The notes: a model not told the origin generated them from the sequence alone. A DNA stretch of 64,000 bases from IMGVR_UViG_3300025162_000016:186001-250000; one strand, 5' to 3'. Shown: positions 4,416 to 60,745, counted from the stretch's first letter. Program-made: numbers and translations.

Positions 4416-4600
4416 TAAATAGTTTCAGTTATATCATGAACTACCCACCCGCTAAAGCAAGTGGGTTTCCCCGCTTGATTAGTTTCTGAGTTTCGTGGTT
4501 CACAGACTTGATTACTCTCTCTGTTTTACCAGATACCATCCTCGACGCCTCCCCACGTTTTTGTTTATCGTGCGATTTGATTCCCAAACCACACAAACCT
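4416..4600 (-). ncRNA. predicted TnpB omegaRNA (scaffold to 4436, then guide GATATAACTGAAACTATTTA)
   Basis: Known TnpB architecture: RNA overlaps the gene 3' end and right end; 5' boundary approximate. Confidence 0.6.
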
Positions 4601-5799
4601 TGTTTTAATATATTCAGGGACGCATTATAGTCCCTATCGTGATGAATGTTACAAATAGGACAATCCCATTCTCTATCACCCTTCTTTAATGATTGGTTTA
4701 TGTATCCACAATCATTACAGGTTTTAGAAGATGGAAACCATCTATCCACTTGGATGAACTTCCTATCGTTCCATTCACTCTTATATTTGAGTTGTCTAAC
4801 AATCTCATACCAAGATACTTCTTGTATTGACCTTGCTCTCCTATGGTCTTTCATCATATTGATTATACTTAAATCTTCCATACAGATTATTGCGTTGTTT
4901 TTGACAATATCATTAGTAAGTTTATGAGTATAATCCATTTTTACATTAGTTATCTTTTCGTATGTTTTTGCTAACTTAACTCTTGCTCGTTCTCTATTCT
5001 CACCTTTCTTTGTTTTCTTGGAATGCTGTCTTTGTTGGTATTCCAGTTTCTTTCGATATTTCTTTGCTATTCTTGGATTGGAAATCTTTTTACCATCGGA
5101 GAAAGTCATCAGGTCAATCAATCCTAAATCAATACCTACACTTTTATTTGTCTCCTTGACTTTAAGTGTGAAATCTTCCTCAACAATGAATGATACAAAA
5201 TACTTGTTAGTTTTGGTTTTGGAAATGGTGAGGAAACAAATCTCATAGTTTTCTCCAAATGGTCTATGTTGGTTTACCTTAATTGCTTTCAATTTAGGAA
5301 TAGTCAATAGTCCATTCTCAAAAGTAAAATGTTGAGGAATACAGAATGATTGTTTATCGTATTTGGATTTGAAAGATGGGAAGGACGCAATCTTTTTGAA
5401 GAACCTTTGGTATGCTACATCAAGTTGTCGTAATGATTGTTGGAGAGATTGACTATTGACTTCGTTCAACCATTCAGTATCTTTATCCTCTTTCAATGCC
5501 ACAAGAAGTTTAGCCGTATCGTTGTATCCTATTCCTTTTCCATTTTTGAGGTAATGGTCTTTTCGGGCATTAAGAAAGTAATTAAAGACGAAACGGGAAC
5601 AGCCAAAGGATTTAGCAAAGAAGGTCTTTTGTTCTTCGGTTGGAAGAACTGGAAACTTATATCCTCTGGTTATTCTTTTTGTTGTCATCAAGTATAAGTA
5701 TATCGAAGATTTACAAAAAGTTATTTTATTTGTAAATATCTTCATTTTCAATGGGTCGCATTCATCCCATCCCCTAAAGGAGATGGGTTTTATGCTCCC
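4436..5799 (-). mobile_element. non-autonomous IS200/IS605 (IS1341-like) element, TnpB only
   Basis: Subterminal hairpins CCCATCTCCTTTAGGGGATGGG (left end) and CCCACTTGCTTTAGCGGGTGGG-TAGTTCAT (right end); left boundary uncertain by 1-2 nt. Confidence 0.85.
4441..5688 (-). CDS. tnpB: TnpB RNA-guided endonuclease
   Basis: RuvC D/E/D (GIDLG, MEDL, DRDYNA), CNDC/CPIC zinc ribbon; start re-placed at MTTKR. Confidence 0.95.
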   Translation of the reverse strand: MTTKRITRGYKFPVLPTEEQKTFFAKSFGCSRFVFNYFLNARKDHYLKNGKGIGYNDTAKLLVALKEDKDTEWLNEVNSQSLQQSLRQLDVAYQRFFKKIASFPSFKSKYDKQSFCIPQHFTFENGLLTIPKLKAIKVNQHRPFGENYEICFLTISKTKTNKYFVSFIVEEDFTLKVKETNKSVGIDLGLIDLMTFSDGKKISNPRIAKKYRKKLEYQQRQHSKKTKKGENRERARVKLAKTYEKITNVKMDYTHKLTNDIVKNNAIICMEDLSIINMMKDHRRARSIQEVSWYEIVRQLKYKSEWNDRKFIQVDRWFPSSKTCNDCGYINQSLKKGDREWDCPICNIHHDRDYNASLNILKQGLCGLGIKSHDKQKRGEASRMVSGKTERVIKSVNHETQKLIKRGNPLALAGG

Positions 5800-6595
5800 T
5801 CAAAGATAAAATGCCATGGCTAAGGAGTTGTTTTCTACTATCATTCGAAACCTTCTAAATATCCGGAAATCATTTTCGGGCATGAAGAAGTTATGTTTTA
5901 ACATTATATCGATAAACCATACATTTCCTTTAGCATTTACATGTTGAGGTTGGGCTTCATTCACACTGAAAGTGCTATCGTGAATGAGTAGATTTGTACG
6001 TCCTGTCAGATTTTTTACCGTAGCATTTAAATCCGGAATATGTTCAAAACAATCCATCGCAAGAATGGCGTCGTAATGAGTTGCCGGTCCTTTTAAAAAA
6101 TCATCTACATCGATCATTTGGATTCCGGCAATTCCAAATTTTTTCATTAAAAATTCACAGAACTTATATTGATGACTAGTTTTAAAATCACAATATAGAA
6201 TATGTAGGTCTGGAAATTTCTCTTTAAGAAGAAAGCTCGTAATACCCAGTCCTCCCCCCATAATCCACCAGCGAAGTTATTTTGTAATTTTCTATTGCAT
6301 TATAAATGAAACCTAGTTTATCTGTAAACATTGAACAAGCATTCCATGGTAATAAATCAAAGATGTAAAAATCGGTTTCTTTATACCAATTTTCAATAGT
6401 TATATTATCGTGATTTTTTAATTTATTCCATTCTTCCGATAGTTTCTCAACCCCTTTCCGGACGTTGAGATTTCCCATCTTGTTGAATTGATAAAGCAAT
6501 GTTTTTACATCATCTTTAGAGTATTTCTCTTTGAAATATTCATGAACAAGATCGACGCAGGTATTTTCATTTGAAATAGTGTCAAGGATAGTCAT
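5800..6595 (-). pseudogene. class I SAM methyltransferase frameshifted in a G6 tract
   Basis: ORFs 6224-6595 and 5800-6261 join as VDYGGGLGITS if one G is removed at 6254-6259; later AMDCFEHIPD motif. Confidence 0.8.
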
Positions 6596-7859: not shown

Positions 7860-8759
7860 TCATTTGGGAAGGTTAAACAATCTACCAACCCATTTGAGTA
7901 AAAGCTCTCTTTCTAGATTTAATCTATCGTTAAACATATTGCATCTGTATCCGGTATAATCTCTTACAATATTATAATCTTTAAGAGGACTAGTGTTGTG
8001 ATGTCCTTTGAGTATGTTTGTTACATGGTATTGTGGAATTTTATGATATAATCTAGACCATTGGAGGCAATAATCATCGTGTCCTATTAACAAATCTGGA
8101 CAGTATAAATTATCCGGCATTTGGTCCGATAAGACGGATGCGGGGGATTCGATTGTATTTAATGGTTGTCCGGGTACTACAAAAGGTATAGTTATAATGG
8201 TTGGGTCTCCCCATTTTTCATTAAATGCGTAAAGTGTTTCCAATGAAATTGGATCTGCGAATCGCATAAATCCATCTTTTATATCTTCGTTTTTTATGTT
8301 TTGAATAGAACAATGTTCTATTGGTTCCCATCCTCCCCACATTTTTCTGGCGGCAAATGTTAAAATATATGGGCGAGTTTTACATTGTTTGTCAAATGTT
8401 TCCGATATATAAAAATATTCCAATGGAAGTAAACAATCTGCGTCTCCCCAATAATTGAGTCCATTTTTTATTGAAAACTCTCGTTTAACGCAAGGGGGTC
8501 CAAAAATCGGATCTTTGTCTGTTATATGAACAATCTCACAGTGTTTAACAAAGGGATGACTCATGAAATGAATCCATTGTTCTTCCGGATCATTGATCGG
8601 AGTGTCCATGTAATTTTTTGTTTGTCCGTTTAGAATTAGAATAAATTCGGTAGGGGCGGTTGAATATTTATATGCATTTTCTATAGACGTTAAAGTTTCA
8701 TTAACTACTTTTACGTCTTTCCAAGAAATTTGCATTGTAAATCTATTTTTATTTATCAT
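7860..8759 (-). CDS. putative GT-A glycosyltransferase
   Basis: WGDAD DxD-like motif, GHDD; cluster context. Confidence 0.55.
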   Translation of the reverse strand: MINKNRFTMQISWKDVKVVNETLTSIENAYKYSTAPTEFILILNGQTKNYMDTPINDPEEQWIHFMSHPFVKHCEIVHITDKDPIFGPPCVKREFSIKNGLNYWGDADCLLPLEYFYISETFDKQCKTRPYILTFAARKMWGGWEPIEHCSIQNIKNEDIKDGFMRFADPISLETLYAFNEKWGDPTIITIPFVVPGQPLNTIESPASVLSDQMPDNLYCPDLLIGHDDYCLQWSRLYHKIPQYHVTNILKGHHNTSPLKDYNIVRDYTGYRCNMFNDRLNLERELLLKWVGRLFNLPK

Positions 8760-11208
8760 GAAGTTGTCTTTGTAGTTTGATTTTAGTCATTTGTAAAATG
8801 TTATCCACTGCCGCTTGTCCGAATTTTTCTTTTATTCTAATTAAAAATTTAGGATTTGTATGATACGTTAAAAAGGCGTCATCTCGGAATTTCAATACTT
8901 CTTTATTACTCAAATGGTTGGTATGCATTGGAAACGTTTCATATGCATGAAAGGAAAATCCCAAATAGTCGGTTGGCATCGCATCTCCTTTATCCAGTGC
9001 TTCTTTATAGATTTGGCTTCCCGGTAATGGCATCACTGCATACGCATTCCATCCACGGGTGGCAAGCTCAAGGCTCAAATCCAATGTAGCTTTCATGCTT
9101 TCATAATCATCCCCTATATGTCCGAAAAGATAGTTTCCCAAGACTTCAATATCTGCTTCCTCTATCTTTTTTACTACATCCCGAATATCGACATCTAAGA
9201 ATTTTCCTTTAGAAATTTCCAGACGAATTTTTTGGCTTCCGCTTTCAATTCCGAGACATAACCATCGGAATCCCGCTTTACGAAGAAGTTTCAAAACGCC
9301 GGGGTCTTTGGATACAGTATCGATACGTGAATATGCCCATAAAAGGAGGTCTTTACTGTATTCTTTTTTGGCAAGTCCTTCACAGATAGGCACATAGTAT
9401 TTAGAATTGAGTAAAAACATTTCGTCGCATAAGCGAATAGTGCTAACTCCCATCTCATGGAGTTTATCAAACTGTTTCAATATAAATTCCGGAGACCAAT
9501 ACCGCATACCTTTGTAGTTTGATGCTACACCGATAGGGTCATTATCGTTTCGGTTGATGATATTAATCATGCAATTATGGGTCAAAACGTTGTTTGCATA
9601 AAAATTATTATGAGGTTCGCATTGTAAATTAAACGTTTCAGTATTTTCGTCTATAACTTTTATATCTTCAATTCTAACATAATGGGGGCAGTTTATAGCC
9701 TTTTCTAACATTATTTTTGTATATCTTTTACCCCCAAAACCTCTATCAAAATTAGTTTTTGAGTGACAACTGGCACAAAGAGTTATAAGATTTGAAGTTT
9801 GATTATTATACTTATTATAATCAATGTGGTGAACATCCAATTTTCCGGTCGTTTTTTTACATTCCTGACATGTATTATTATCACGTATTTTAACGGATTT
9901 TCTCACTCGTCTGTTTTTGCTTAGATAATATGGTTTAAATTTTACACATTTTCCACCGTCCCATTTGGGATTTTTTTCTTTTAAAAATCGTTCACTTGCT
10001 TTATCTTGATTTTTTCGTGAATACATCGGATTAGCATCAGATAACATTTTTTCTCGGGCCATTTTAGATGCCATTTCTCGTCCTTTTTCTGTACAAAGAT
10101 GTGGAATTGTTTTACCCGTAATGAATCGTTCTTTGCTTGTTTTGGAAGTTTTAGACCGGGTTTCATTGACAAACATGGGATTATAATGCTTCATTCTGAA
10201 TATATTTTTGTCGTTTGCATCAACTACAAGTATTTTATCTCCTATTTTAAGATTTTCTGCGTTTACCCACGTTCCATCGTTATAAAATGGATGCTCTCCG
10301 GTACATTTCACGATTTTATTATCGGTTAGTTTAATATGATATATTTTTTCGGAACGTAGATTGTTAGACACTATTACAACGGTTTCAGAAATTTCCAATT
10401 TATTTTCATCCCATGCTAAGAGTTTATCTCCGATTTTTACATCTTCGATTTTTTTATTCTTATCATGTGAAAGAGTTATTTTCGTGCCCGCAGATAAACA
10501 GAAATTACACCCAAATTTGCATCCAAATGATGAAAATAATGTAGCATAGGGTGTTCGGAGGTTAGCATCGTAGTTAGCGTGCCACATGGGAGCCCTATAA
10601 AGATCAAAGGGTTTTTCTTTCTTTGGTAACAAGTCCCACGCATAGCCGGGAAGATCAATGTCCATTCGTTCTTGAGGCACAATCTTTCCAGGTGCCGTTA
10701 AAAAAGGCTTTCCGTCTTTTCGAAATCCAATTCCGTTAATTTGTCCCAAGGTTGACGGGTCCGTTGTCGCTTGAATACCGGCGAGTGCCCACAATGCATA
10801 GACGCCTTCGTTAGTTAGAACAATATCAATGCTCGGCTCGTCTTGCAGAGCTTTGATGGGAAGAGCCTGCATATAGGAACCTACGAATATGTTCGGGATT
10901 TTGCAATCACTAGATTTGAGATATTTAGACAATTGTGTCGCCCCATACATACTCACTGTTCCGGCATTTACGTTTTGTCCATAGACAACGAAGCATAACC
11001 ATTTGGGATTTAGTTCTTTGATCCTTTGAAGTCCCTGTTCGTGAGATTGGTTCTCCGCATTCATGTCAAGAATGCCAACCTCATGTCCTACGGAACGACA
11101 CGACTCGGCAAGTAGTAAACCCCAAGTGGGTGGTTCAATAGAAGAATAGGTTGTTTTCAGTTCTTGATAAACCCGGTCATTTGATGGTATTACAAATAAG
11201 ATGTCCAT
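8749..11208 (-). CDS. cobalamin-binding radical SAM enzyme (class B methylase-like) with intein
   Basis: N-terminal B12-binding domain; CKFGCNF|C after splicing gives CxxxCxxC; DEMF, GIESG; start re-placed at MDILFV. Confidence 0.9.
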   Translation of the reverse strand: MDILFVIPSNDRVYQELKTTYSSIEPPTWGLLLAESCRSVGHEVGILDMNAENQSHEQGLQRIKELNPKWLCFVVYGQNVNAGTVSMYGATQLSKYLKSSDCKIPNIFVGSYMQALPIKALQDEPSIDIVLTNEGVYALWALAGIQATTDPSTLGQINGIGFRKDGKPFLTAPGKIVPQERMDIDLPGYAWDLLPKKEKPFDLYRAPMWHANYDANLRTPYATLFSSFGCKFGCNFCLSAGTKITLSHDKNKKIEDVKIGDKLLAWDENKLEISETVVIVSNNLRSEKIYHIKLTDNKIVKCTGEHPFYNDGTWVNAENLKIGDKILVVDANDKNIFRMKHYNPMFVNETRSKTSKTSKERFITGKTIPHLCTEKGREMASKMAREKMLSDANPMYSRKNQDKASERFLKEKNPKWDGGKCVKFKPYYLSKNRRVRKSVKIRDNNTCQECKKTTGKLDVHHIDYNKYNNQTSNLITLCASCHSKTNFDRGFGGKRYTKIMLEKAINCPHYVRIEDIKVIDENTETFNLQCEPHNNFYANNVLTHNCMINIINRNDNDPIGVASNYKGMRYWSPEFILKQFDKLHEMGVSTIRLCDEMFLLNSKYYVPICEGLAKKEYSKDLLLWAYSRIDTVSKDPGVLKLLRKAGFRWLCLGIESGSQKIRLEISKGKFLDVDIRDVVKKIEEADIEVLGNYLFGHIGDDYESMKATLDLSLELATRGWNAYAVMPLPGSQIYKEALDKGDAMPTDYLGFSFHAYETFPMHTNHLSNKEVLKFRDDAFLTYHTNPKFLIRIKEKFGQAAVDNILQMTKIKLQRQLHDK
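9574..10500 (-). mobile_element. intein with HNH homing endonuclease (309 aa)
   Basis: Starts CLSAGT, block B CTGEHPF, ends VLTHN|C; HNH core TCQEC..VHHID..N...NLITLC..CH. Confidence 0.92.
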
Positions 11209-11209
11209 G

Positions 11210-12184
11210 TTAATATGTTTGATTTTGATAAAGAGTAAGGAATTCCGTAATTTTTTCAATTGATAATCCATGTGCATCTAACATTTCATCTCTCGTGCCA
11301 TTTCCTAAAATATAGCCTTCTTCTAGACCAAAGCGTTTGAGTTTACATTGAAGATTTTTATCGGCAATGGTGTCTGCAATAACGGAGGAAAATCCTCCCC
11401 CGTTTAATGTTTGCTCTTCTAATGTTACAACCAACTCAGCGTGTTTTAAATAGTTATCTAGTACAACCGGAATGGGTTTGATTTGAAATACATCAAATAC
11501 GTTACAATCGATTGTTTTAGTAATTTTAAGTGCTCGACTTAATAGATATCCTGAAGTAACCAAACAAATTTTTGTGCGGCATCCTTCGTCTTTCAATGGA
11601 AACACTCCTTGATTGTTTTCCATATCAAATCCATTATACTGTGTTTCGGTGGTGGCATCATATGTTTTTTCATAAAACACATCCAAAGCGGTATCGTATG
11701 CTCGTTCAAGTCTTATATAAATCAATTTTCGGTTTTTATACGTATATTTTACCAATTGTTTGACTGCGGGATTGGTTGCGGGAGAATAAATTTCTATTCC
11801 GCATATGCTTCGCATATACGCCATATCATCTGTCGGATTGTGGGCGGCACCCGCTGGTGCATATCCTAGTCCGACTCCCACTCCTAGAATGGTAATAGGG
11901 TTTTGAGCAATTGCACATGAATATCTAATCTGCTCGAAGCATCGAGCCGACCAGCATGCCATATAATAAACATATACCTTTTTCCCACGGCTAGAGAACC
12001 CTGCCGCTACATTGATGGAGTTCTGTTCTGAAATGCCGGTTGCGAAAAATTGATTTGGAACTTCTTCTCTCCATTTGTCTAACGCCGGTGCTCCCATATC
12101 CGGAGAAATTAGAATTACATCTTTATCCTTTTTAGCTAGAGTTAGAAGCTCCATTAAAAATAAATCTCGTTGGGTAACACTCAT
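11210..12184 (-). CDS. transketolase C-terminal (pyrimidine-binding) subunit
   Basis: GISEQN, EQIR, YIRLER, TLEEQ; ATGA overlap with upstream gene. Confidence 0.9.
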   Translation of the reverse strand: MSVTQRDLFLMELLTLAKKDKDVILISPDMGAPALDKWREEVPNQFFATGISEQNSINVAAGFSSRGKKVYVYYMACWSARCFEQIRYSCAIAQNPITILGVGVGLGYAPAGAAHNPTDDMAYMRSICGIEIYSPATNPAVKQLVKYTYKNRKLIYIRLERAYDTALDVFYEKTYDATTETQYNGFDMENNQGVFPLKDEGCRTKICLVTSGYLLSRALKITKTIDCNVFDVFQIKPIPVVLDNYLKHAELVVTLEEQTLNGGGFSSVIADTIADKNLQCKLKRFGLEEGYILGNGTRDEMLDAHGLSIEKITEFLTLYQNQTY

Positions 12185-18094: not shown

Positions 18095-18981
18095 GATTTT
18101 TTCGGAATATTTTCTAAGAATTCCCGTTTATTATCGTACAGCCAATCTACAGTTGTTTTATACCCCTTTGCTCGTTCTAAGTTATCTAATACGGCATCTA
18201 TTTTGGATTCATATAGTTCTTTGGTAAGCGTCGGTAGGATTTTTCCTAGTTCATCTAGGGTTTCAAACCGAACAATTCCAGCCGGATTGAAAAATTTTTC
18301 TAGACATTTACTACCACAAAATACGGGTATAGTTCCTACAACCATCGCATCGGTTACTTGTTCCGAAAACCAATCATCTATATTAGTATTTGGAATAATA
18401 ATAGAAAACCTATAAGGAGCTAACGCTATAATTTTACCCATTCCCGAGGGAAGATATGTGTCTAATATGTTGTTAAAACCACGTCCGAATACTTCAATTT
18501 TATCTCCAAATCTTTCCACCACGTCGTATCGCATTTTATGTCCGGTAATCCATCGTTTTTGAGACACTATAATTGATACGTTACGTTCTTTTTCATAATT
18601 TCCATAATCTTCTGGCGCAATACCTTGTACGCAGAAATAAATCCAATGAAATTTGTCTTTTCCTACCCAGTTTTCTATAAAACGATATGATGTAAAAACG
18701 TAATCAAAATGCTGGTGATTTTTTTCTAGCCATTTATAGGGATGAAACATGTTTGGATCGAACTGTCCAGCATTATCGTAAATAGTAGGGACTTCTTCCA
18801 TCAAAGCTATTTTGATTTTACCGTTATAATTGACATGTTCTGGAAGTCGCTTGTCTTCGAAAATATGAACATCGCCATTCTTATTTCCAGTATACCAATC
18901 CCATGCTTTTTTGGAGGGAGGAACCCAATGCTGAATTCCTTCCCATGTATCCATTCCTGTATGTGCGGTGATTATGTTCAT
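18091..18981 (-). CDS. GT10-like (alpha-1,3-fucosyltransferase-like) protein
   Basis: YRFSI.I.N...DWFSEQ..DA...GTIPVF.G, a degenerate GT10 motif. Confidence 0.7.
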   Translation of the reverse strand: MNIITAHTGMDTWEGIQHWVPPSKKAWDWYTGNKNGDVHIFEDKRLPEHVNYNGKIKIALMEEVPTIYDNAGQFDPNMFHPYKWLEKNHQHFDYVFTSYRFIENWVGKDKFHWIYFCVQGIAPEDYGNYEKERNVSIIVSQKRWITGHKMRYDVVERFGDKIEVFGRGFNNILDTYLPSGMGKIIALAPYRFSIIIPNTNIDDWFSEQVTDAMVVGTIPVFCGSKCLEKFFNPAGIVRFETLDELGKILPTLTKELYESKIDAVLDNLERAKGYKTTVDWLYDNKREFLENIPKKS

Positions 18982-24886: not shown

Positions 24887-25573
24887 TTATTTTGTTTTTT
24901 GCCCGAACACGGTATGTCCACGATTTTCATCAATCGTAAACCATTCATTATATCGAATATTTGTTTTTAATTGAGTTGCCATGGTTTTTTCGTGATATAA
25001 TGCCAAATTAAAATCAAATGGCAATGTGGTAAAGGAAGCGTGCCCTTCTATTTTCTCATGCAGTCGTCGTTCCCAATGAATTCGAGATGGATCGTTTTTA
25101 TAAATGCGTCCTTGAAAATCAGGAGCATTTACTATGGGTCTGTTATCACATTCTGGACATGGAGTAAGTCTCCACCCCCATGTTTTAGCATCTTGAATTG
25201 TTACTCCAATATAATCATTAATTCGGCTAACAAAAATCAATTCAATTGTTGGATTTAACTCAATAATGGATTTGATATTAATAATTAGATTTGGATTTGG
25301 TATCTCATCCCCGTCAATTTGAAATATCCATGGATTTTTACATTGCTCGTTTCCAAAATTTTTATGTTGGGAATAATTACGATCAAGTTTGTGCGGAATT
25401 AATTGTATAGAATCTTTCCATTTATTGAAAATTTCTATTGTATTCGGATTATCAGAGAAATCATCTAATATAATAACTTCATCTTCTATATCTTTATGAG
25501 CAATAACATTGGTTAAACACTTATCTAAAGTATCACTTTCATTGTGTGATGTTATTAAATAACTTATTTTCAT
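24887..25573 (-). CDS. GT2 glycosyltransferase (KdtX/LgtF-like)
   Basis: ISYLITSHNE, DDFSD, QIDGDE, PDFQGR, LHE. Confidence 0.88.
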   Translation of the reverse strand: MKISYLITSHNESDTLDKCLTNVIAHKDIEDEVIILDDFSDNPNTIEIFNKWKDSIQLIPHKLDRNYSQHKNFGNEQCKNPWIFQIDGDEIPNPNLIINIKSIIELNPTIELIFVSRINDYIGVTIQDAKTWGWRLTPCPECDNRPIVNAPDFQGRIYKNDPSRIHWERRLHEKIEGHASFTTLPFDFNLALYHEKTMATQLKTNIRYNEWFTIDENRGHTVFGQKTK

Positions 25574-28148
25574 AATTTTTATTTTCACTTATCGGCATTT
25601 TCGCAATTTCCGCTTGAGTTGGAGGATTTATTGGTGTAGACGCAGTTGGTAATTTTGGGAGATTTAGTTTTTTTAATTTTGGAAGTATAATTTGTTGCGG
25701 TAATACGAATTTAGGAACATATTTTTCCAAAAGCGAGTGAAATGCTTTATCCATTGCCTCAATTGAGAATTTCTCGGCATTTTCAGCACGAAGTAATTCC
25801 GCATTAGGTAATAGCGTATCGTAATTATTAAAAGCTTGTCGCATTTGTTCGGCGGCTTTACCATAATCGACTGTAAACCATTGCGATTCAGCTACAAACC
25901 ATTCATTTACTGCTTCGCCGGAAATCTGTTCTAGTTTACCTTCAAAGAAATTTGCATATTTCGGATTCATGAAATCCAGATGACCACTCCATTTTGGTGC
26001 AATCAATGGTTTTCCGCTTAATGTTGATAATAACATGGGATGACAATTGTGTACTACAAAATTTTCCGTACAGTAACTTTCATCTTCTTCGACTGATAAA
26101 TTATATACCATTCCTTCATATGGTAAGGACTCGATGGTTTTTAGTTTAAATACATGATATGCTACATTATCATATGAAACGGAAAATGATTTGGGAAGTC
26201 CTCCACGGGACAAATATTTATCATTTTGGTATTGAATATTACAAAAACTGTGATTTTTATTTAAAATATCAATAAGTGCGGTATTAGACTTATAATTTGA
26301 AGTTCGAATACGACTAACCGGTGCATTAAATTTATTGTTATCTTTTACATCATGACAAGAGTGTATATTTAATTTTAATAAACACTCTCGTACATCTCTA
26401 ATTAAACTGTCATTTACTAATTGAAGAGATATGTTTTTATTATTTTTTAAACTACCATCTCCCATGAAAATTGATGATATTAAATTTTCAACAAATATTT
26501 TTGATGAATTTTTTAATATCATGGGAATTCTTTTATAAATTGCCCCTGATCCAAATAAAGCCGTTAAGAATTCTCCGATAATTGCGGAATAAAAAATCAG
26601 CTTTAATGAATTTTTAGTTTTGTGAGGTTCGAGGGAGTAAGAATCAATTTCAAAGACAGTTTTGAAACATTCTATTAATTCTTTTGCTATTGTAAGTTCC
26701 TCGTTTTTATTTAAAGAAAATATGATTGCTCCGTTGGAAACGCATCCCTCGGATAGAAAATAACCACATATTTTTGCAAATTCTGGAGATAAAACAATAT
26801 TATTTTTTATTTTCTTTATAGTAGTTTCATTTGAATGAATATAGGTTAAGTTTTCGTCTCGCAATTCAATGTTTGGACACTGTATAAATTCAGATATGTT
26901 TATGGCCGGAGGTGTGGTCCAAGTGTGTTCTTCGGGCAATGCAAGATAATCCGATAGTTTTAATTCCTCTGTTGAAATCCATTGTAAAACATTATTTCTA
27001 TATACATAACATCTATGGTTGGGGGTAAATTGATATGAAATAGAATTGATTCCATTGTAAACCGATATTTTTTTCATTTCTCCACTATAATGTCTAGATA
27101 ATGATGCGGTTACTTTTTTCCATTGTCCCGTATGTGTAAGCACCATATCTTTATTAGTGACATTTTTTATATTTTTTAATCCGGTTTTGGTAACAATTGG
27201 AGTATCTTCTAAAGTACAATAACCCTCTCCATGAGTAAATGAAACGTGAACCTTCACTTTTTTATGATTATAAAGTGAATTCATTTCGATATCACTTAAT
27301 TCGCCATGTAGAAGATAGATGTTTGGCCAGTTGGTAATAGTAGAATTTTCTTTTTTTACCATATCTGTCACTTCTTTTATTTTAGTCAAACACTCATATC
27401 TATCTATGTTAGATAAAGTCGCTCCACTGGTTTTAAGAATAAGTGCAGGGGGATTTTTTACTCCTTTGAATGTCTCAAGGAAAGTTTTCATTAACCATCC
27501 GATAGATTTTCTATCTGAATTCATTGAACCACCCGTCCATTGACCCACGAACAGAAATGCGAAGTTTTCAGTAATCCCAGACATGGCAGTTTCCAATGAA
27601 TCAATCACCGCATTCGTTTTATGATATAAATTGGTGTTCGCTCCCCAAAATAAAACTTCAATGGGGGTCTTTACGATCAATGGTTCAGTTACACCGGTAG
27701 GAAGTTTTTTAGAATATTGTGCTCCTGCGAATACATCTTTACCATGTTGTGACATGACAATATTTAAATCCATTCGGTTAAGACCTTCTAACCATTCTGG
27801 TTTAGGAATGGTAGTTTCAATGGCGGCGGTAATTCCAATATTGTATTTACCAATTTTCATGATTCCTTGCGGAGTCTGTAAAAATTCATTGGGAATAGAT
27901 ACTTGAATAAATAATTCCGGCTGTCGAGTTAATGGTCCTTGAAGTAGTCTACTAAGAAGTTCTTTAGTTAACGGATCCTTGCCTTCCATTTCTAAGTTTC
28001 TCTGTGGGCATTGTCCCCAACGTGTAGGAACAACTCGAACGTCGTATTTATCGTATTTTAATAGACTTTTAGCTAATGCTAACGCCCAATCTCCATACCC
28101 ACTTCTCGTCATTAATGGCGAGGTAATTACACAAACAGGTTTATTCAT
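25539..28148 (-). CDS. GT4-like glycosyltransferase with intein
   Basis: SGYG, FLFVGQW..RKS, HGEGY|CHP. Confidence 0.88.
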   Translation of the reverse strand: MNKPVCVITSPLMTRSGYGDWALALAKSLLKYDKYDVRVVPTRWGQCPQRNLEMEGKDPLTKELLSRLLQGPLTRQPELFIQVSIPNEFLQTPQGIMKIGKYNIGITAAIETTIPKPEWLEGLNRMDLNIVMSQHGKDVFAGAQYSKKLPTGVTEPLIVKTPIEVLFWGANTNLYHKTNAVIDSLETAMSGITENFAFLFVGQWTGGSMNSDRKSIGWLMKTFLETFKGVKNPPALILKTSGATLSNIDRYECLTKIKEVTDMVKKENSTITNWPNIYLLHGELSDIEMNSLYNHKKVKVHVSFTHGEGYCTLEDTPIVTKTGLKNIKNVTNKDMVLTHTGQWKKVTASLSRHYSGEMKKISVYNGINSISYQFTPNHRCYVYRNNVLQWISTEELKLSDYLALPEEHTWTTPPAINISEFIQCPNIELRDENLTYIHSNETTIKKIKNNIVLSPEFAKICGYFLSEGCVSNGAIIFSLNKNEELTIAKELIECFKTVFEIDSYSLEPHKTKNSLKLIFYSAIIGEFLTALFGSGAIYKRIPMILKNSSKIFVENLISSIFMGDGSLKNNKNISLQLVNDSLIRDVRECLLKLNIHSCHDVKDNNKFNAPVSRIRTSNYKSNTALIDILNKNHSFCNIQYQNDKYLSRGGLPKSFSVSYDNVAYHVFKLKTIESLPYEGMVYNLSVEEDESYCTENFVVHNCHPMLLSTLSGKPLIAPKWSGHLDFMNPKYANFFEGKLEQISGEAVNEWFVAESQWFTVDYGKAAEQMRQAFNNYDTLLPNAELLRAENAEKFSIEAMDKAFHSLLEKYVPKFVLPQQIILPKLKKLNLPKLPTASTPINPPTQAEIAKMPISENKNYENKLFNNITQ
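26046..27218 (-). mobile_element. intein with LAGLIDADG homing endonuclease (391 aa)
   Basis: CTLEDT start, FTPNH, GYFLSEG and IFMGDGS motifs, VVHN|C end. Confidence 0.92.
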
Positions 28149-29838: not shown

Positions 29839-32481
29839 TCATAGTTTTTCTAATTTCTTTTTTGTTTCTTCGAGTTTAGTTTCAATCGCAACCTGATCGA
29901 TTGTAGGAACCTCAAATCCCATGTTTTTATCTAACATAAAATTGCCTACATGATCTTTTACCGAATACAATCCAAACGATTTAGATGGTTTCCAATTATG
30001 GAATACATATTCCATTGCATCCACATATTGCTTACACATATTAGTGGCATTTATCCCGCCTTCATTGCACGCCCAACGTCTACCTTCGGCCCCACATTTT
30101 TCTCGCATTGATTTAGACATTTTATACCAATACATATATGCATCCGCAATATCTTCCCATTTCGTTAGATCATCGAAAATATACGGAGTAGGAATACTAC
30201 CTTGAATCATTCTAGTAACTGGCCACAAAGGATATGCCCAAACCCCATGATTTTTATATTTTCCCTCGCTATTAGAACCAAATCCCTGACTAAATTTAAT
30301 CGGATTTCCTTCATCGTCGGTTTGACCAATTTGATCTTGAAGACCACCCGTAACTGATACTATTACCGGAGTCTCACACATGATACTTTCAGCACATGAT
30401 AGTCCATAGCCTTCATTCGAATTATGCAAAATAAATGATTTCATGGTATAAGAATTGTCTTCTTCTACCTCAATATTATATACTTTTCCGGTATAAAGAT
30501 ACTTCTCGATTTTATTTATCGACATCAAATAATATCCGTCTTTAAACCAACTTCTGGATGAATCATTATCATCACTGGTATGAGTAAAATATATTTGATG
30601 ATGAGTATTTCCGGGTTTATATCCAGATGTTCCTTCCGCTAAGCGGATTTTTTTATTCAATCTTACCAGTGCGGTTATTAACTGTTGTTGAAGAACATTG
30701 GAAACAGTAACGATTTTAGTATAGTTACTATCGTTCGTATGACCATCGTATCCATCGGAATCTATAAGGCCATTTATGAATGAATTTAGGATAGTTTCAT
30801 CTTTATTAAACAATATTTCCGATGGAATTTTTTTGGTGTTAGAACTGTTTCCACATATTGTTTTGAAAAAGTTTTCCATTATACCTATAAATGGATGGGA
30901 GAAAAATAAATTAGTGCATTTTTTGTTTTTTTGACCATGGGGTTTAATGGAATAACTTCCACCGAATATATTCACAAAGATATTTCCTATCTTATTGATT
31001 TCATCGTTACCATAATCAGAATTAAAACATATATTATTGTTTGATCCATCTCCGCACCATCTTCCTAAGAGATATGCTAAATCGTTGGTCAGTGGAATTT
31101 TTCTATTTAATACATTTTTACTGTGGGGAAGAAATATTTCAGAATCATTGGACAAATACTTTCTGCTTTTGTATTCGGGAATGAATTTTTCCAAATCAAA
31201 AACCACATTTTCGGTCATATTTTCTGTGAGTTTTGGATACATTACTAAATCTCCCGGTGATAATTCTCCGGATGGAATCCATTCCATATATTGTTGAATT
31301 GACTCGTTTTCGTTCAACAATTTATTTTTCATTTTACTTTTCTTTACCGCCCACACTTTATGTTCGGAGGTAAGTTCCAATGGTTCATTTAAGTTAAATG
31401 GAGTAATTTTAACCATTTCACAGTCAACATTATCATATTCAAATGTTTTTAGTACTGGACGAAATCTTCCTTTATGCGTCAAAACGGTTTCTCCAATTTT
31501 TATTTCTTCAATATTTTTGGGTCCGATTTTAGTTGTTACTTTATAACCCGGTGGAATACAAGATGCATTCACAGTGACATCTGCCATGCTATAAAGATAT
31601 GCCATTTCTTCTGGCGGCATTTTTGCGGGAGAAAAAATTATATCATAATCCGGACATAACGCTTCTTTTACTGCAATTAAATTCGTCCCCGCCTCTTGCA
31701 TTATTTCGGTGTGAAGTAACAAACAACATTTTGCCGCTTCTTCTTTGGGAAGATTATCACAGAAAGTGCGGTAACCTAATATAATGTTGCTAGTGCGTTT
31801 TCGTTGAACATTTCTACTATTGTAAAAAATAACGAAATCGTATTTTTTTCCATTAAAAACCGCTTTTCTGCGATCTCTATATTCTTGTGTAGTAGAATCT
31901 TTTTTATGAAACATATCTTCATTGATTCCATGCGGAACATAATGAAGAAGTGTTTTTCCATTCATTGGTTCATTGATGGTACAACAATTCTTAGGATCAA
32001 GAACCCATTTATTAATATTTTCTGTTTGTCTACTAATGGATAGTAATGCATCGCAGCTTTCATAGAACGCTCGATTATACATTGGATACGGAATGTCATC
32101 CCAGATGTTATAATATGTAATCGGGAGTTTTTTACGTAAACTATGTTCCAATGAGAAAAGCCATCCAAAAAATCTTGGATCGGTAATCATGCAAATGGCA
32201 TCGGGGCGTTCTTGATTAATAATAGAATGTAAAATATTTTCATTGCCATATCCATCGACCGGATAAAGTTTTATATATGCATCATTTATTTTTCTAAGTT
32301 GATTTGTTGCTTGTGATAAATCTAAAACCTTTCCGGTGTCTGGATTTTTAATTGCCCCGGCAATACAACAAAAATCATATTTATGCGCACACCCCAGAAT
32401 CATTTCTCGCCCCATAGTTGCAACCCCCGAATGCATTCTTATATCATCTCCAATCCAAAGTATTTTTTTCTTATTGCTCAT
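29839..32481 (-). CDS. GT4-like glycosyltransferase with intein
   Basis: HSGVAT, VPHGI, SRN..RK, AS|SNEGYGLSCAES (ExxxxxxxE). Confidence 0.9.
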   Translation of the reverse strand: MSNKKKILWIGDDIRMHSGVATMGREMILGCAHKYDFCCIAGAIKNPDTGKVLDLSQATNQLRKINDAYIKLYPVDGYGNENILHSIINQERPDAICMITDPRFFGWLFSLEHSLRKKLPITYYNIWDDIPYPMYNRAFYESCDALLSISRQTENINKWVLDPKNCCTINEPMNGKTLLHYVPHGINEDMFHKKDSTTQEYRDRRKAVFNGKKYDFVIFYNSRNVQRKRTSNIILGYRTFCDNLPKEEAAKCCLLLHTEIMQEAGTNLIAVKEALCPDYDIIFSPAKMPPEEMAYLYSMADVTVNASCIPPGYKVTTKIGPKNIEEIKIGETVLTHKGRFRPVLKTFEYDNVDCEMVKITPFNLNEPLELTSEHKVWAVKKSKMKNKLLNENESIQQYMEWIPSGELSPGDLVMYPKLTENMTENVVFDLEKFIPEYKSRKYLSNDSEIFLPHSKNVLNRKIPLTNDLAYLLGRWCGDGSNNNICFNSDYGNDEINKIGNIFVNIFGGSYSIKPHGQKNKKCTNLFFSHPFIGIMENFFKTICGNSSNTKKIPSEILFNKDETILNSFINGLIDSDGYDGHTNDSNYTKIVTVSNVLQQQLITALVRLNKKIRLAEGTSGYKPGNTHHQIYFTHTSDDNDSSRSWFKDGYYLMSINKIEKYLYTGKVYNIEVEEDNSYTMKSFILHNSNEGYGLSCAESIMCETPVIVSVTGGLQDQIGQTDDEGNPIKFSQGFGSNSEGKYKNHGVWAYPLWPVTRMIQGSIPTPYIFDDLTKWEDIADAYMYWYKMSKSMREKCGAEGRRWACNEGGINATNMCKQYVDAMEYVFHNWKPSKSFGLYSVKDHVGNFMLDKNMGFEVPTIDQVAIETKLEETKKKLEKL
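30421..31560 (-). mobile_element. intein with LAGLIDADG homing endonuclease (380 aa)
   Basis: CIPPG start, LTSEH, LLGRWCGDG and INGLIDSDG motifs, ILHN|S end. Confidence 0.92.
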
Positions 32482-36080: not shown

Positions 36081-36728
36081 GTTGCTATGCGGGGATATTC
36101 TGATATTGTGGGAAGATATGGAAATATTAGAATCGACGGATTGTGGAAAACATGATGTTAAAAACATTAAATTTTCACGAGTTTGGGCAATGCCGAACTC
36201 TGATACGTTTAAAGTCAAGCCCATTGGCGAGTTTGTTAAAAAATATCTTGACAAATCGAAAGTAAGTGTAGATTCTTTTGCTCGGAATAATTCATGGTGT
36301 TCCTATACGAATGATATTAATCCTACCACAATTGCCCAATATCATTTAGATGCGGAAGCATTTCATTTGGAATTAGTTAAAAAGGAGATTAAATGTGATT
36401 TATGGGTGTTTGATCCGCCATACTCTCCACGGCAATTAAAAGAATGTTACAATAGTTTTGGCAGAAAAATGCAATTGGAGGATGGACAAACGGCAAGACT
36501 TCGTAAAATATGGAAAGCCACTATGGTTCCGGTGTTAGCATTGGATGCGGTGGTTTTATCTTTTGGATGGAACACGGTTGGAATGGGTAAGAAATTGGGG
36601 TTATCAACTGATGGATTAAATGTTACAATTCTTACAAAATTCTAAAATAATTTATAACTTCAACACAATAAATAATAAAATATTTACTTTTTTATGATTT
36701 TCTACTTTTTACTTTATACTTATATCAT

Positions 36729-36887
36729 ATGGGAAGAAAACGAAAAAATATAACTTATGCACAATTACTTGCGGGTGGACGCTTGCGATCCCGCAAATAT
36801 TATAGTGAAAATAAAGAAGAATGTAAACGAAAAGCATTGGAGAGATATTATTCTATAAAAAATGCTTCTATTACTCCCAAATCATAA
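36729..36887 (+). CDS. small basic protein inside IS (52 aa, not in ORF track)
   Basis: MGRKRKN...RKYYSENKEECKRKALERYY; stop abuts tnpB ATG; TACTTATA box 4 nt upstream. Confidence 0.7.
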   Translation: MGRKRKNITYAQLLAGGRLRSRKYYSENKEECKRKALERYYSIKNASITPKS

Positions 36888-38120
36888 ATGCCTAAATTTC
36901 TAAAAGGATATAAAATTGAATTGGCCCCAAATAAGTGTCAGATGACATTGTTTAGAAAGCATTTTGGAGCCAGCAGATTCGCATTTAATTGGGCGTTACA
37001 AAAGAAAAAAGAAGCATTTGATAGGAAAGAAAAGATTCCGAACAATATTGAATTGCATAGAGAGTTGAATAAACTTAAGGGAACGGATGCCTTACCTTGG
37101 GCTTACGATGTTAGTAAAGTCGCATTTCAGTCGGGTTTAATTAACTGTGATAGAGCATTTCAGAATTTCTTTAATCGTTGTAAGAAAAAAGTCAAAGGGA
37201 AGAAGGGATTCCCAAAATTTAAGTCAAAGAAGAATGAGACACAATCATTCAAATTAGATGGTTCGATATACTTGACAGATAAATCTCACATTAAATTACC
37301 TCGTATTGGTAAAGTCAAGTTAAAAGAATTGGATTACATTCCAATCGATACTGAAATCAAATCAGTAACAATTAGTCGTAAAAGCAGTAAATGGTTCGTA
37401 TCTTGTTTGGTAGAATCTGATATTAAGATGCTCCCACAGACAGATAAGAAAGTTGGAATTGATTTAGGAATTAAGACCTTAGCAACCTGTTCTAATGGGA
37501 CTAAATATGAGAATCCCAACGCATTAAAATTCAATTTACGAAAATTAAAGAGAAAACAACGTCAGTTAAGTAGAAAAAAGAAAGGAAGTCAAAATTATAA
37601 AAAATCAAAGTTAAAACTTTCTAAGTTACATAATAGAATTTCTAACATAAGGAAAGATTCGTCGCACAAAGCGACTTCAAAAATAATTAACGAAAACCAA
37701 GTAATTGTTATTGAAGGATTGAAGATTTCCAATATGTTAAAAAATCACTGTCTTGCTCAGGCAATTAGTGATATGTCTGCCCATGAATTTCGCAGACAGT
37801 TAGAATATAAGGCAAAATGGTATGGTCGTGAAATCATTATTGCCGATACTTACTTTCCATCTAGCAAGACTTGTTCGTGTTGTGGATGGAAGAATGATAA
37901 TCTCACATTGAAAGATAGAATTTTCAAATGTGAGATTTGTAAGAATGAGATGGATAGAGACTTGAATGCCTCTAAAAATCTTGAGAAACTTTCTACCGTC
38001 AGTTCGACGGGAATTTACGCCTTGGGAGATGGGAGTTCGGTTTGTCCAGCAATGGATAAATCTAGCCCGTCGTTGAAAAAGGAATCTAACGGAAAATTTA
38101 CATACACCCTAAAAAGATGA
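36888..38120 (+). CDS. tnpB: TnpB RNA-guided endonuclease (IS607-type)
   Basis: GIDLG, IEGL, DRDLNA; CSCC/CEIC zinc ribbon. Confidence 0.95.
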   Translation: MPKFLKGYKIELAPNKCQMTLFRKHFGASRFAFNWALQKKKEAFDRKEKIPNNIELHRELNKLKGTDALPWAYDVSKVAFQSGLINCDRAFQNFFNRCKKKVKGKKGFPKFKSKKNETQSFKLDGSIYLTDKSHIKLPRIGKVKLKELDYIPIDTEIKSVTISRKSSKWFVSCLVESDIKMLPQTDKKVGIDLGIKTLATCSNGTKYENPNALKFNLRKLKRKQRQLSRKKKGSQNYKKSKLKLSKLHNRISNIRKDSSHKATSKIINENQVIVIEGLKISNMLKNHCLAQAISDMSAHEFRRQLEYKAKWYGREIIIADTYFPSSKTCSCCGWKNDNLTLKDRIFKCEICKNEMDRDLNASKNLEKLSTVSSTGIYALGDGSSVCPAMDKSSPSLKKESNGKFTYTLKR

Positions 38121-38170
38121 ATGTAAATTTTTGTAAGTTTAGAAGAACGGTTTGCAATCGTTGAAATAAT
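37990..38170 (+). ncRNA. predicted TnpB omegaRNA (scaffold to 38150, guide TTTGCAATCGTTGAAATAAT)
   Basis: GC-rich hairpins CCGTCAGTTCGACGG and GATGGG...CCCGTC overlapping tnpB 3' end. Confidence 0.65.
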
Positions 38171-57838: not shown

Positions 57839-57850
57839 TATTTATAATAT

Positions 57851-58345: not shown

Positions 58346-59404
58346 ATGAGTAACAACATTGCTGTCATAACTGGTGCCGGGGGAATGGACGCAAAGACAT
58401 TAACCCATTTTTTGTTAAATAAAGGATATAAAGTAATTTTAACATATAGAAGGAATTCGTTTTTTGATGTCCAACACATTAAATCATTATTTAAAACAGA
58501 TTTAGAAGAAAATTTTAATTCTCAGTTAGAATGTGAGGTTTGTGATGTTTCTTGTCAAAATAGTGTTATAGAATGTATTAAAGAAATTATTAAAAAACAT
58601 GGTAGAATAGATGAGTTATATCATTTAGCGGCAATGACTCATGTTGGAAATAGTTTTAAACAAAAGGAACTATCAATTATAGTTAATGGACAAAGTCATT
58701 ATTATTTTTTGGAAGCTCTTAAAAATAATAGTCCAACTACAAAATTTTATGGGGCAATGACGAGTGAGTTAGTAGGTGGAGTGAATCAAATAGCATATGA
58801 TGAAGATATGAAATGGAATCCCAAGTCCCCATATGCTATTGGAAAAGCATTAGGGGCAAGATGGATAGAATTCTATAAAGAATCGGAAGATAGTCATCTG
58901 TTTTGTTGCTATGGTATTCTTAGCAATCACTCGAATACATATCGAAGTTTAGATTTTGCTGTTCGCAAAATAACAAATACGGCTGCAAGAATTTTTCTCG
59001 GCAAATCTTCCCAACTACAACTGGCACATTTAAATTGGGCAAGAGATGAACATTGGAGTGATTTTGGGTGTGAAATGATGTGGAAAATGTTGCAGTTAAA
59101 ATCACCGGAAAATTTTGTAATAGGAAACGGCGAATGCCATTGGGGCGAAGAATATGTAGAAGAAGCGTTTTCTTATTTTAATCTTGATTGGAAAACGTAT
59201 GTAAAGTTTGATACTAATTTAAACAGACCGAATGAAGTTGTTAAATTGGTTTCTAATAGTAATAAAGCCAAAGAAATGTTAGGATGGAAATCAAATAGAT
59301 TAACATTTAAAAAACATATTGAATTACTTTGTAAATTTGACTATGATCTGGAATCTGGAAATGTCCCGGTTCGCCCTGATGTTTTTGAATTATATCCAGA
59401 ATGA
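58346..59404 (+). CDS. gmd: GDP-mannose 4,6-dehydratase
   Basis: ITG..G.D, HLAAMTHV..SF, TSEL, PKSPYA.GK, RKIT, RP.EV. Confidence 0.88.
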   Translation: MSNNIAVITGAGGMDAKTLTHFLLNKGYKVILTYRRNSFFDVQHIKSLFKTDLEENFNSQLECEVCDVSCQNSVIECIKEIIKKHGRIDELYHLAAMTHVGNSFKQKELSIIVNGQSHYYFLEALKNNSPTTKFYGAMTSELVGGVNQIAYDEDMKWNPKSPYAIGKALGARWIEFYKESEDSHLFCCYGILSNHSNTYRSLDFAVRKITNTAARIFLGKSSQLQLAHLNWARDEHWSDFGCEMMWKMLQLKSPENFVIGNGECHWGEEYVEEAFSYFNLDWKTYVKFDTNLNRPNEVVKLVSNSNKAKEMLGWKSNRLTFKKHIELLCKFDYDLESGNVPVRPDVFELYPE

Positions 59405-59423
59405 ATTAATTCATATTTCTTAG

Positions 59424-60745
59424 AGGAAGGAAACCCCAACGGCTTTAGCCTTGGGGAGGAATTCCGACCACTTCCAATATCCTACTATAGTTTAATCCTA
59501 ATGTCAATAAATTCTTTCAGTGTATGAAAATATTTGATGTTTTGAGATTTTTGAACCATACTTATATTGGATGAGTAAATTAACTTACAACACAAGAATA
59601 ATCTTTGAGAATCAACTCGACAATAATAAAATTGTTGCAATGATGGATTCTCAACTATTTGCATGGAACGAGTGTTCTAAAATTAAATTCTCATCAGTAA
59701 CTAAAAATTCCATTGTCGAACTGCATTCTAAATTCTATAAATCTTTCCGAGAGAATAACCCCGATATTCCATCTCAAGTTGTAATTTCTGCCGAACAATC
59801 AGTTCTATCTTCTTACCGATCAATTAAATCAAATAAACATAAAATTAAAACTGCCATTGTTAAGAAAAATCCATCTATTCGATTAGATAAAAGAACATAT
59901 TCCTATAAAAATGGAGTTTTTAGTATAATTTCACTAGAAAAAAGAGTTAAATGTAAACCATTCTTATTTCCAAAACTACAAGAATTAATATCTAAATATT
60001 CTTTTTGCGATCCATTATTATTTATACGAAAAGATGAAGTCTGGATTTCTCTTACTTTTAACATTCCCGTTTTATTACCCACCAAGATACTAGCCATTGG
60101 AGTTGATTTAGGTTGCATAAATTTAGCAGCAACTAGCGAAGGTAAATTATATAAAGATAAATCGTTTAACGCTAGAAAACGACAGTTGAGACATTTAAAA
60201 TCATCATTAAAATCCAAAGGTACTAAATCCTCTCGTAAACATTTAATTAAATTACATCACAAAGAACATAATATAAATAAAAATTTATCGCATCATTTAG
60301 CAAATATAATCATTAAAGATACCACTGCGGATGTGATTGTCCTAGAAAACTTAAAGTCATTAAAAGTAAAAAAACATAAGTATCAGAATAAAAATAGAAT
60401 TTCTCAAGTTCCTATGTTTGAATTGAGAAGAATACTTACCTATAAGGCACTCCTGTCTAATAAACAGGTGATAACAGTTAGTCCATCGTTCACTTCGCAA
60501 ATTGACCATAGAACCGGAAAATTGGATGGTCAAAGAATTGGTGGTAGGTATATCGGAAAAGATGGTCAGATATTACATGCGGATATAAATGCTGCATGTA
60601 ATATAGGATTACGTTCCAAACACCCATGCTCAATAAGAAATTATTATGTATGGCAGGCGACAGTCAATTCGCCAATCGTATGTAAATCTTCTGCTAGTAG
60701 AGAAGTATTACAAGCCCCTATCCCTTTAGGGTAGGGGTTGTTGAC
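59424..60745 (+). mobile_element. non-autonomous IS200/IS605 element inserted after TTAG
   Basis: Left-end hairpin CCCCAACGGCTTTAGCCTTGGGG; right-end hairpin CCCCTATCCCTTTAGGGTAGGGG-TTGTTGAC; removal restores a stop for the HNH gene. Confidence 0.9.
59571..60734 (+). CDS. tnpB: TnpB RNA-guided endonuclease lacking zinc-ribbon cysteines
   Basis: GVDLG, VLENL, HADINAA; TSQIDHRTG replaces CxxC. Confidence 0.92.
   Translation: MSKLTYNTRIIFENQLDNNKIVAMMDSQLFAWNECSKIKFSSVTKNSIVELHSKFYKSFRENNPDIPSQVVISAEQSVLSSYRSIKSNKHKIKTAIVKKNPSIRLDKRTYSYKNGVFSIISLEKRVKCKPFLFPKLQELISKYSFCDPLLFIRKDEVWISLTFNIPVLLPTKILAIGVDLGCINLAATSEGKLYKDKSFNARKRQLRHLKSSLKSKGTKSSRKHLIKLHHKEHNINKNLSHHLANIIIKDTTADVIVLENLKSLKVKKHKYQNKNRISQVPMFELRRILTYKALLSNKQVITVSPSFTSQIDHRTGKLDGQRIGGRYIGKDGQILHADINAACNIGLRSKHPCSIRNYYVWQATVNSPIVCKSSASREVLQAPIPLG

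Follow-up and report, generated by a model that had tools for sequence, protein, structure and literature searches.

Three TnpB elements of an uncultured freshwater jumbo phage are likely wired to the start signals of their phage lineage

Why do three different TnpB elements in one stretch of phage DNA carry the same eight nucleotides at the same distance before their first ATG? The stretch (the window) is 64,000 nucleotides long and represents bases 186,001–250,000 of a single viral record of 368,758 bp (IMGVR_UViG_3300025162_000016; G+C 35.8%). A preliminary description of the window proposed that the elements had converged on the transcription programme of the phage, and that TnpB would act there as a programmable homing endonuclease against co-infecting relatives lacking the insert. 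Our analysis indicates that the TnpB elements are likely wired to phage expression signals, through an architecture that is partly inherited rather than acquired by convergence. The genome is that of an uncultured freshwater jumbo phage, heavily colonised by IS200/IS605 and IS607 insertion sequence (IS) elements. It encodes a T4-type major capsid protein and a family-B polymerase, its core genes are T4-like, and it possesses direct terminal repeats of ~7.1 kb. The nearest cultured relative of the polymerase belongs to a Microcystis phage and is only 40% identical, no cultured phage aligned with 20 kb of the DNA in a megablast, and freshwater and lake metagenome runs contain the same DNA as the window.

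Element ends were placed where homology to copies in other contigs with unrelated flanks breaks off. By this definition, element 1 (El.1; 4436–5805, − strand, 1,370 bp) and element 3 (El.3; 59415–60745, + strand, 1,331 bp) are of the IS200/IS605 type and carry TnpB only, and element 2 (El.2; ~36597–38152, + strand) is derived from IS607 and has no tnpA. The octamer TACTTATA, hereafter the box, is located at 5693–5700 (−), 36717–36724 (+) and 59559–59566 (+), each time followed by 4 nt and then ATG. The preliminary description was thus right about the spacing, the location of all three boxes within the element ends, the two IS families and the RuvC D-E-D triad, which is kept in all three TnpB proteins. 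At sites 1 and 3 the first ATG is that of tnpB; at site 2 the box serves a 52-aa small open reading frame (sORF), and the ATG that follows is the start of this sORF, not of tnpB2.

This placement is real and not due to chance. The window contains five copies of TACTTATA against 3.7 expected, so that the octamer is not enriched there, as would fit a coincidence in an AT-rich genome. Genome-wide, 28 copies are found in ~723,000 positions on both strands, and arithmetic from these counts gives a chance of ~3e-11 that TACTTATA stands at exactly N4 before three of the 16 first genes of IS units. Together with the conservation of the box across relatives described below, this makes coincidence extremely improbable. 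The three TnpB units in the window are the only ones in the genome with TACTTATA at N4. All three sites have an A at −1 and a T-tract 15–19 nt upstream, both of which are marks of the phage-wide motif, and within the genome the first genes of IS units are enriched for the box (6/16 compared with 34/364 other ORFs, p=0.003).

The box matches the commonest start-proximal motif of the phage, [A/C]TA[T/C]TTATA-N3-5-ATG with an upstream T-tract. Of its two main forms, TATTTATA lies 3–5 nt before an ORF starting with ATG in 22 of 133 genome copies, and for TACTTATA the figure is 8 of 28. Of the other variants with one mismatch, mostly 0–7% of copies stand before such ORFs, and TATAAATA stands ahead of starts in only 5/133. 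Sites that look functional display A or C at −1 and a T-tract 15–18 nt upstream, and the box is followed by ATG, never by GTG or TTG. An unbiased scan of 296 well-defined starts returned an unrelated GGTCACAACTAGAAT family as the commonest upstream 6-mers (up to 12); TATTTA at −12 ranked next and led all 6-mers at its offset. Upstream of ~12 genes genome-wide lies a third conserved sequence, GGTCACAACTAGAATTAC, which stops a few nucleotides short of the ATG. Enrichment of the box motif extends to two related jumbo-phage contigs, with 50 occurrences against 16 in the control for G001 and 24 against 4 for G002, and no enrichment was detected in three other large viral contigs. The earlier claim of a shared phage promoter variant is therefore supported, in that the box is the start-proximal signal of the lineage itself. 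PHROG annotation of ten box-bearing genes revealed no temporal class. The box also resembles the yeast mitochondrial promoter, which we take to be coincidence.

The kind of signal is suggested by a second promoter class in this genome, which is sigma70-like (TTGACT, 16–17 nt, TATAAT). In 37 of 146 TTGACN-N16-18-TANNNT sites, an ORF with ATG begins 5–9 nt after the −10 hexamer, with a peak at 6–7 nt. Because the ATG peaks at this distance, leaderless starts appear to be the rule, and the phage seems to make mostly leaderless mRNAs from two promoter-like classes. A dense set of consensus sigma70-like promoters, with the ATG 6–7 nt past the −10, occupies genome positions 251–340 kb (for example 263578, 310128 and 312148). 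A Bacteroidota-type promoter (TTTG / TAnnTTTG) was considered and dropped, as the phage has clear TTGACT-N16-17-TATAAT promoters. When the box is read as TA[T/C]TTA followed by TA and N3-5, the distance from hexamer to ATG equals that of the sigma70-like promoters. Because of this match, the box is most likely a −10-type promoter without a −35 element that would give rise to leaderless mRNAs.

Late promoters of T4 carry TATAAATA at −10, have no −35 element and are read by gp55. The box is similar in being an AT-rich −10-type octamer without −35 before many genes of a T4-like phage. It differs in sequence, as it reads TATTTATA or TACTTATA in sense orientation and not TATAAATA, and in its distance of 3–5 nt from the ATG, which predicts leaderless mRNA where T4 has a leader with a ribosome-binding site. 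It also differs in that searches with T4 gp55 and Sigma70_r2 found no homologue in this genome, although divergent homologues could escape both. This last result belongs to a group of observations that weigh against the promoter reading. A search of the genome for the T7-type single-subunit RNA polymerase family was negative as well, a result that is uninformative because the controls were silent too, and the box is missing from 9 of the 16 IS units. Expression of TnpB during genome replication, as the preliminary description proposed, gained no support, and no RNA run was found.

In addition, some boxes lie only 11–12 nt past the stop codon of the preceding gene, which also fits a signal that acts on RNA. 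Such a signal would serve translation initiation or processing, for example as the site of a phage RNA-binding protein or an AU-specific endoribonuclease, and tnpB would be expressed from longer transcripts. This would agree with the position of several boxes 11–33 nt past the stop of a co-directional gene, often with TGA directly before the box, with the lack of a Shine-Dalgarno sequence between box and ATG, and with the finding that ATG alone follows the box. A signal on RNA accounts less well for the bipartite motif with its T-tract ~15 nt upstream, for the hexamer-to-ATG distance equal to that of sigma70-like leaderless promoters, and for boxes that follow terminator-like hairpins or stand back-to-back in divergent gaps of 63–80 nt. 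We thus consider an RNA-acting box quite improbable.

The remaining points against a phage-specific promoter concern the C variant, which contains TATACT and could be a host-type −10. In TTGAC-containing promoters of this genome, one of them a tRNA promoter, TATACT serves as −10. In nearly all cases the C variant reads TATACTTATA, as it does at sites 1 and 2 and in most relatives; site 3 reads CATACTTATA, and in El.3 an alternative TTGATG-N17-CATACT reading is possible. Judged from sequence alone, a phage box variant and a host-type −10 are indistinguishable. The elements could then have inherited a host-type −10 of their own (TATACT, or CATACT in El.3), whose likeness to the phage motif would be the result of AT-rich drift.

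To weigh this, we turn to the comparison of phage-borne and bacterial relatives that the preliminary description had suggested. Among 73 cellular relatives of TnpB1, 28 carry a TANNNT hexamer 5–9 nt before the start, with a peak at 6–7 nt, in agreement with an inherited −10. The exact 8-mer is present in none of the 73, and a one-mismatch version in three. A sigma70 consensus scan around the three TnpB units found nothing above chance and no match at the boxes, where a −35 at 16–18 nt is lacking. Moreover, some orthologues have TATTTATA instead, the top motif of the phage and no TANNNT hexamer. The additional TA that follows the hexamer is retained, as is the A at −1. We therefore regard a purely host-type −10 as unlikely. 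Because 28/73 cellular relatives have the hexamer at this distance, a −10 placed for leaderless tnpB mRNA is ancestral to the IS family, with only the exact 8-mer being phage-specific. The claim that the elements had converged on the phage programme was thus overstated.

In phage-borne relatives of TnpB1 and TnpB3, the box or its T variant persists across a synonymous divergence ranging from 0.4 to saturation. In the TnpB1 clade (57–100% protein identity, all in phage-like contexts), ATACTTATA is kept at N4-5, with synonymous divergence from 0.6 to saturation. TnpB3 orthologues carry TACTTATA in L059 and L071 and the majority form TATTTATA in L060, L061 and G001:16141; more distant copies of this clade have other AT-rich boxes. 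All TnpB1-clade relatives of inspected context are located on phage-like contigs down to 55% identity, and the nearest cellular relatives reach only 47%. In the 48.8-kb Logan contig L186, a 73%-identical gene of the TnpB3 clade adjoins a Y1 TnpA and PSCyt2/PSD1-type genes and may lie in cellular DNA. Instead of the box, this gene has TAATATAT-N4-GTG.

The elements show functional constraint, with dN/dS values of 0.06–0.14 across all three TnpBs. El.1 copies in L004, L005, L007 and L076, which define its ends, are 84–86% identical at the DNA level and have unrelated flanks. Directly 5′ of its left end lies TTTAT (5806–5810, −), a candidate target site or transposon-associated motif (TAM), which is found 10–11 nt ahead of the conserved left-end GGGAGCA in four El.1-type copies with differing flanks. 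The left end contains a subterminal hairpin read from the sequence (5766–5787, −), for which compensatory changes occur in L004 and L005. The box, preceded by a T-tract at 5715–5719, stands before the ATG at 5688 of tnpB1 (4441–5688, −). This gene encodes 415 aa with the Pfam domains HTH_OrfB_IS605, OrfB_IS605 and TNB, the triad D187/E271/D353 and a CCCC zinc finger; it matches ISDra2 TnpB structures with E=2e-63 and shows a dN/dS of 0.08–0.11. Folding predicts an omegaRNA-like structured 3′ region (4436–4597, −) that includes the right-end hairpin (4443–4466). It folds better than shuffled sequence (z=-3.3) and has 46 consensus pairs among four copies, five of them compensatory. The last 34 nt of El.1, which terminates in ...TAGTTCAT, are unchanged even in a 46%-identical paralogue. 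A guide or target is predicted to flank the right end at 4416–4435 (−), by position only after IS200/IS605 TnpB biology, and overlaps the start signal of the next gene. El.1 overlaps the last codons of a methyltransferase gene (5800–5805), to which the insertion gives a new C-terminus and stop. Joining of the flanks in silico yields a plausible end of this gene that overlaps the next start.

The ends of El.3 are defined by L059, L060 and L061, and the element is shared with G001 and G002 without its flanks. The candidate TAM, TTCAT (59410–59414, +), directly precedes the left end; it is kept there in most of ~15 aligned El.3-type copies with unrelated flanks, one of which has TTCAC. Hairpins can be read near both ends (59434–59456 and 60715–60737, +). 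The box at 59559 is followed by tnpB3 (59571–60734, +; 387 aa, TnpB by Pfam, dN/dS 0.10–0.14), which has an intact D-E-D and has lost the zinc-finger cysteines, as have all five TnpB3-clade members of the genome. The right end terminates in ...GTTGAC, and the guide or target predicted by position (60746–60765, +) lies inside the 3′ end of an HNH gene. El.3 overlaps the last codons of this gene (60718–60745) and provides it with a new C-terminus and stop; with the flanks joined in silico, the gene stops one codon beyond the junction. Both element types meet in an NCBI metagenome-assembled contig with phage-like genes (L076:3414-5345), where an El.1-type element is nested in one of the El.3 type; the 473 nt that remain of the latter match the El.3 copy of the window with 100% identity.

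El.1 and El.3 resemble the IS200/IS605 TnpB-omegaRNA systems of the ISDra2 and ISGst type in their OrfB_IS605 and TNB domains with D-E-D, in imperfect subterminal hairpins at both ends without terminal inverted repeats, which are conserved with compensatory changes among copies, and in a pentamer that is conserved immediately outside the left end on its 5′ side. They also share a structured 3′ RNA region into which the end of tnpB extends, shown for El.1, where it is omegaRNA-like by prediction. They differ in that they lack the Y1 (HuH) tnpA, which makes them TnpB-only, IS1341-like members, in that their replicon is a lytic-type jumbo phage and their left end holds the start signal of the phage lineage, and in the missing zinc finger of the TnpB3 clade.

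El.2 has a different history. Its first 70 bp and positions 36883–38152 are homologous to the complete IS607 copies L024 and L025, which bear a TnpA with MerR and resolvase parts. The internal stretch of 217 bp between them (36666–36882) has no counterpart in these copies, which have tnpA and a preceding small ORF in its place, and it carries the box and the sORF. The idea that sORF and box lie outside El.2 was ruled out by direct alignment, which places the IS607 left end at 36597–36665. The box at 36717 is followed after 4 nt by the sORF (36729–36887, +; 52 aa, MGRK...YY..NKE...ERYY), the stop of which abuts the ATG of tnpB2 in TAAATG. According to Pfam, tnpB2 (36888–38120, +; 410 aa) has D-E-D and zinc finger intact. 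It is 87–90% identical at the protein level to its counterparts in L024 and L025, with dN/dS of 0.06–0.08 against them. TnpB2 and TnpB1 are 36% identical, and TnpB3 is 28–36% identical to the others over the RuvC core alone. El.2 thus resembles IS607 in the homology of both ends and of tnpB to complete copies, and differs by the absence of the serine-recombinase TnpA (MerR helix-turn-helix plus resolvase) upstream of tnpB2. It overlaps the last codons of the ORF at 36082–36645 (36597–36645), which receives a new C-terminus and stop by the insertion.

The sORF belongs to a family of small, basic ORFs with members in the related phage G001, at 18525–18665 (−) of this genome and in at least 12 other viral contigs; the loci include L190:1513–1665 and L201–L212. 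Several members bear the same start signal, and the one in G001 has TACTTATA at N4. In seven of nine cases tested, the gene that abuts or overlaps the sORF at its 3′ side was scored as homing-endonuclease-type: GIY-YIG with NUMOD3 (L201, L202), SegE-like GIY-YIG (G001), NUMOD1 or NUMOD3 (L203, L206, L211), and, at 17.6–18.5 kb of this genome, a gene matching PHROG families annotated as endonuclease and HNH endonuclease. The genes in L204 and L209 gave no family match. Because the sORF family elsewhere precedes GIY-YIG and NUMOD genes, TnpB2 appears to occupy the slot of a protein-guided homing endonuclease, so that in El.2 an RNA-guided nuclease would stand where a protein-guided one is usually found. 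Of all observations, this one supports the homing idea best, although indirectly.

T4-like phages have free-standing homing endonuclease genes such as Seg and Mob, which spread by intronless homing. The TnpB units are similar in that a small nuclease gene with its own promoter sits between or at the ends of conserved genes, that inteins and an HNH gene are nearby, and that an sORF partner is common with GIY-YIG/NUMOD genes. They differ in that TnpB would recognise its target by RNA and not by protein.

How the elements move is the next question. At least 15 intact TnpB-like genes are found in the genome, all 15 with D-E-D and 12 of them outside the window (first ATGs at genome positions 7596, 11646, 52412, 76732, 83448, 181044, 191688, 222888, 245571, 276819, 279325, 296987, 323277, 328866 and 353001). 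The earlier statement that transposases are lacking applies to the window, where no Y1 or serine transposase was found; elsewhere in the genome there are four transposase genes, one Y1 transposase at 321,910–322,194, 130 kb off, and three IS607 serine-recombinase transposases. Several of them carry the box. The elements are thus not transposase-free in practice. Between this phage and G001 or G002, only elements align at the DNA level (74–85%). Because the elements align and their flanks do not, the elements must move between phages. In L025, an IS607 of the El.2 type splits a nuclease-like gene; the homologue of this gene at ~152.4 kb in our genome is intact. Both IS200/IS605 types are also represented, here and in related phages, by mini-elements of ~280 bp that consist of a left plus a right end and by solo ends (genome 154964–155244, 260614–260722 and 292089; G002:78090-78337).

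Four further points weigh against the explanation favoured below. No empty-site joint for El.3 was present in four metagenome runs, and exact empty-site junctions of El.1 and El.3 were absent from two collections, one of metagenome contigs and one of viral contigs. In the four runs, the depth of El.3 equals that of its flanks; because of this equality, the elements look fixed in the population. Finally, the TAMs (TTTAT and TTCAT) and the guides are candidates assigned by position only. The metagenome runs also contained one joint from right end to left end (run X1, window 60745 to 59419) and one left-end–right-end mini joint. The former could be the circle junction of an excised El.3, a tandem copy or a related copy.

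These observations bear on an alternative that accepts the promoter match and holds that the elements are selfish IS passengers moved in trans, with TnpB restoring them after excision and no homing. The Y1 TnpA and three IS607 TnpA genes of the genome, several of them boxed, fit this alternative, as do the many mini-elements and solo ends, the joint in run X1 and the fact that presence/absence polymorphism of El.1 and El.3 was not seen. It is at odds with elements shared at 74–85% DNA identity while their flanks do not align, which requires transfer between phages, and with TnpB2, which lacks a cognate tnpA and follows the partner sORF of homing endonucleases. A passenger role without homing is possible, and we hold it to be the less probable outcome.

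Taken as a whole, we favour, with a little more than even confidence, an explanation in which phage-resident TnpB elements use the start signal of the lineage to make leaderless tnpB-omegaRNA and are recopied after cleavage. Each unit starts its first gene with a T-tract, ~14 nt, [A/C]TA[T/C]TTATA, 3–5 nt and ATG. The box would act as a −10-type promoter without −35, with transcription starting on the A of the ATG or beside it, and one leaderless transcript would carry tnpB together with omegaRNA at its 3′ end. The leaderless layout stems from bacterial IS ancestors, and the exact 8-mer is the version of this phage group, travelling inside the element between related phages. From known TnpB biology, TnpB-omegaRNA would be expected to cut a TAM-flanked copy of the sequence adjacent to the right end, either at the excised donor site or in the uninterrupted allele of a co-infecting relative, after which the recombination machinery of the phage would copy the element back in. 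Transposition could be supplied in trans by the Y1 and serine transposases of the genome. In El.2, a promoter-plus-sORF module stands in the position of tnpA; elsewhere such modules drive homing endonucleases of the free-standing kind. With the phage start signal before the first ATG and one unit in a homing-endonuclease slot, the elements give the impression of having resided in phage genomes for a long time. For the TnpB elements, homing is a plausible role; homing itself and the timing of expression are what we infer.

Other features of the window agree in part with the picture of homing competition drawn in the preliminary description. The three inteins it reported are confirmed. The intein-containing genes lie at 8749–11277, 25539–28148 and 29839–32481: one encodes a B12/radical-SAM protein and its intein bears an HNH domain, another has an intein of the LAGLIDADG type, and the third encodes a glycosyltransferase. 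They are part of an extended block in which glycosyltransferase and sugar-nucleotide genes are found. Of the two free nucleases proposed, the HNH gene stands, and the PD-(D/E)XK protein looks like an exonuclease and not like a homing enzyme. An Rfam scan of the window matched no family. Outside the window, genome positions ~337–350 kb form a long, internally repetitive region with hundreds of matches, at 65–75% identity, to the DUF6745 gene of L076.

It is established that TnpB, an RNA-guided nuclease, restores IS200/IS605 copies after their excision (PMC8612924; bioRxiv 10.1101/2023.03.14.532601; PMC10690162). TnpB is frequent in phages (PMC12607003), and a phage-borne tnpB is reported to be induced during infection with cyanophage A-1(L) (bioRxiv 10.64898/2026.02.14.705889). 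Homing into co-infecting phages or plasmids is treated in a 2026 review of OMEGA systems as a theoretical, non-restorative mode with evidence from plasmids only (PMC13565253). The cleavage of an insert-free allele by TnpB, as the preliminary description proposed, corresponds to this transposon non-restorative homing. It differs in that the phage case of the review is theoretical, and the present locus is a natural candidate, not a demonstration. In our literature search, neither phage-type start signals within TnpB elements nor the sORF cassette were found to have been reported.

The locus therefore matters for a family of nucleases that is common in phages and whose homing into co-infecting phages is to date a theoretical proposal. 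It gives testable material in the form of element ends, candidate TAMs (TTTAT and TTCAT), candidate guides and a shared start signal, and it offers a natural swap of TnpB for a protein-guided homing endonuclease. The wide use of leaderless starts from two promoter-like classes bears on host prediction and genome annotation of such phages. More tentatively, and with distinctly lower confidence, these elements may belong to a TnpB radiation that lives mainly in freshwater jumbo phages, carries the leaderless start signal of these phages in the left end and has even been swapped into the promoter-plus-sORF cassettes of GIY-YIG homing endonucleases, and which might perform transposase-independent, RNA-programmed homing between co-infecting phages.

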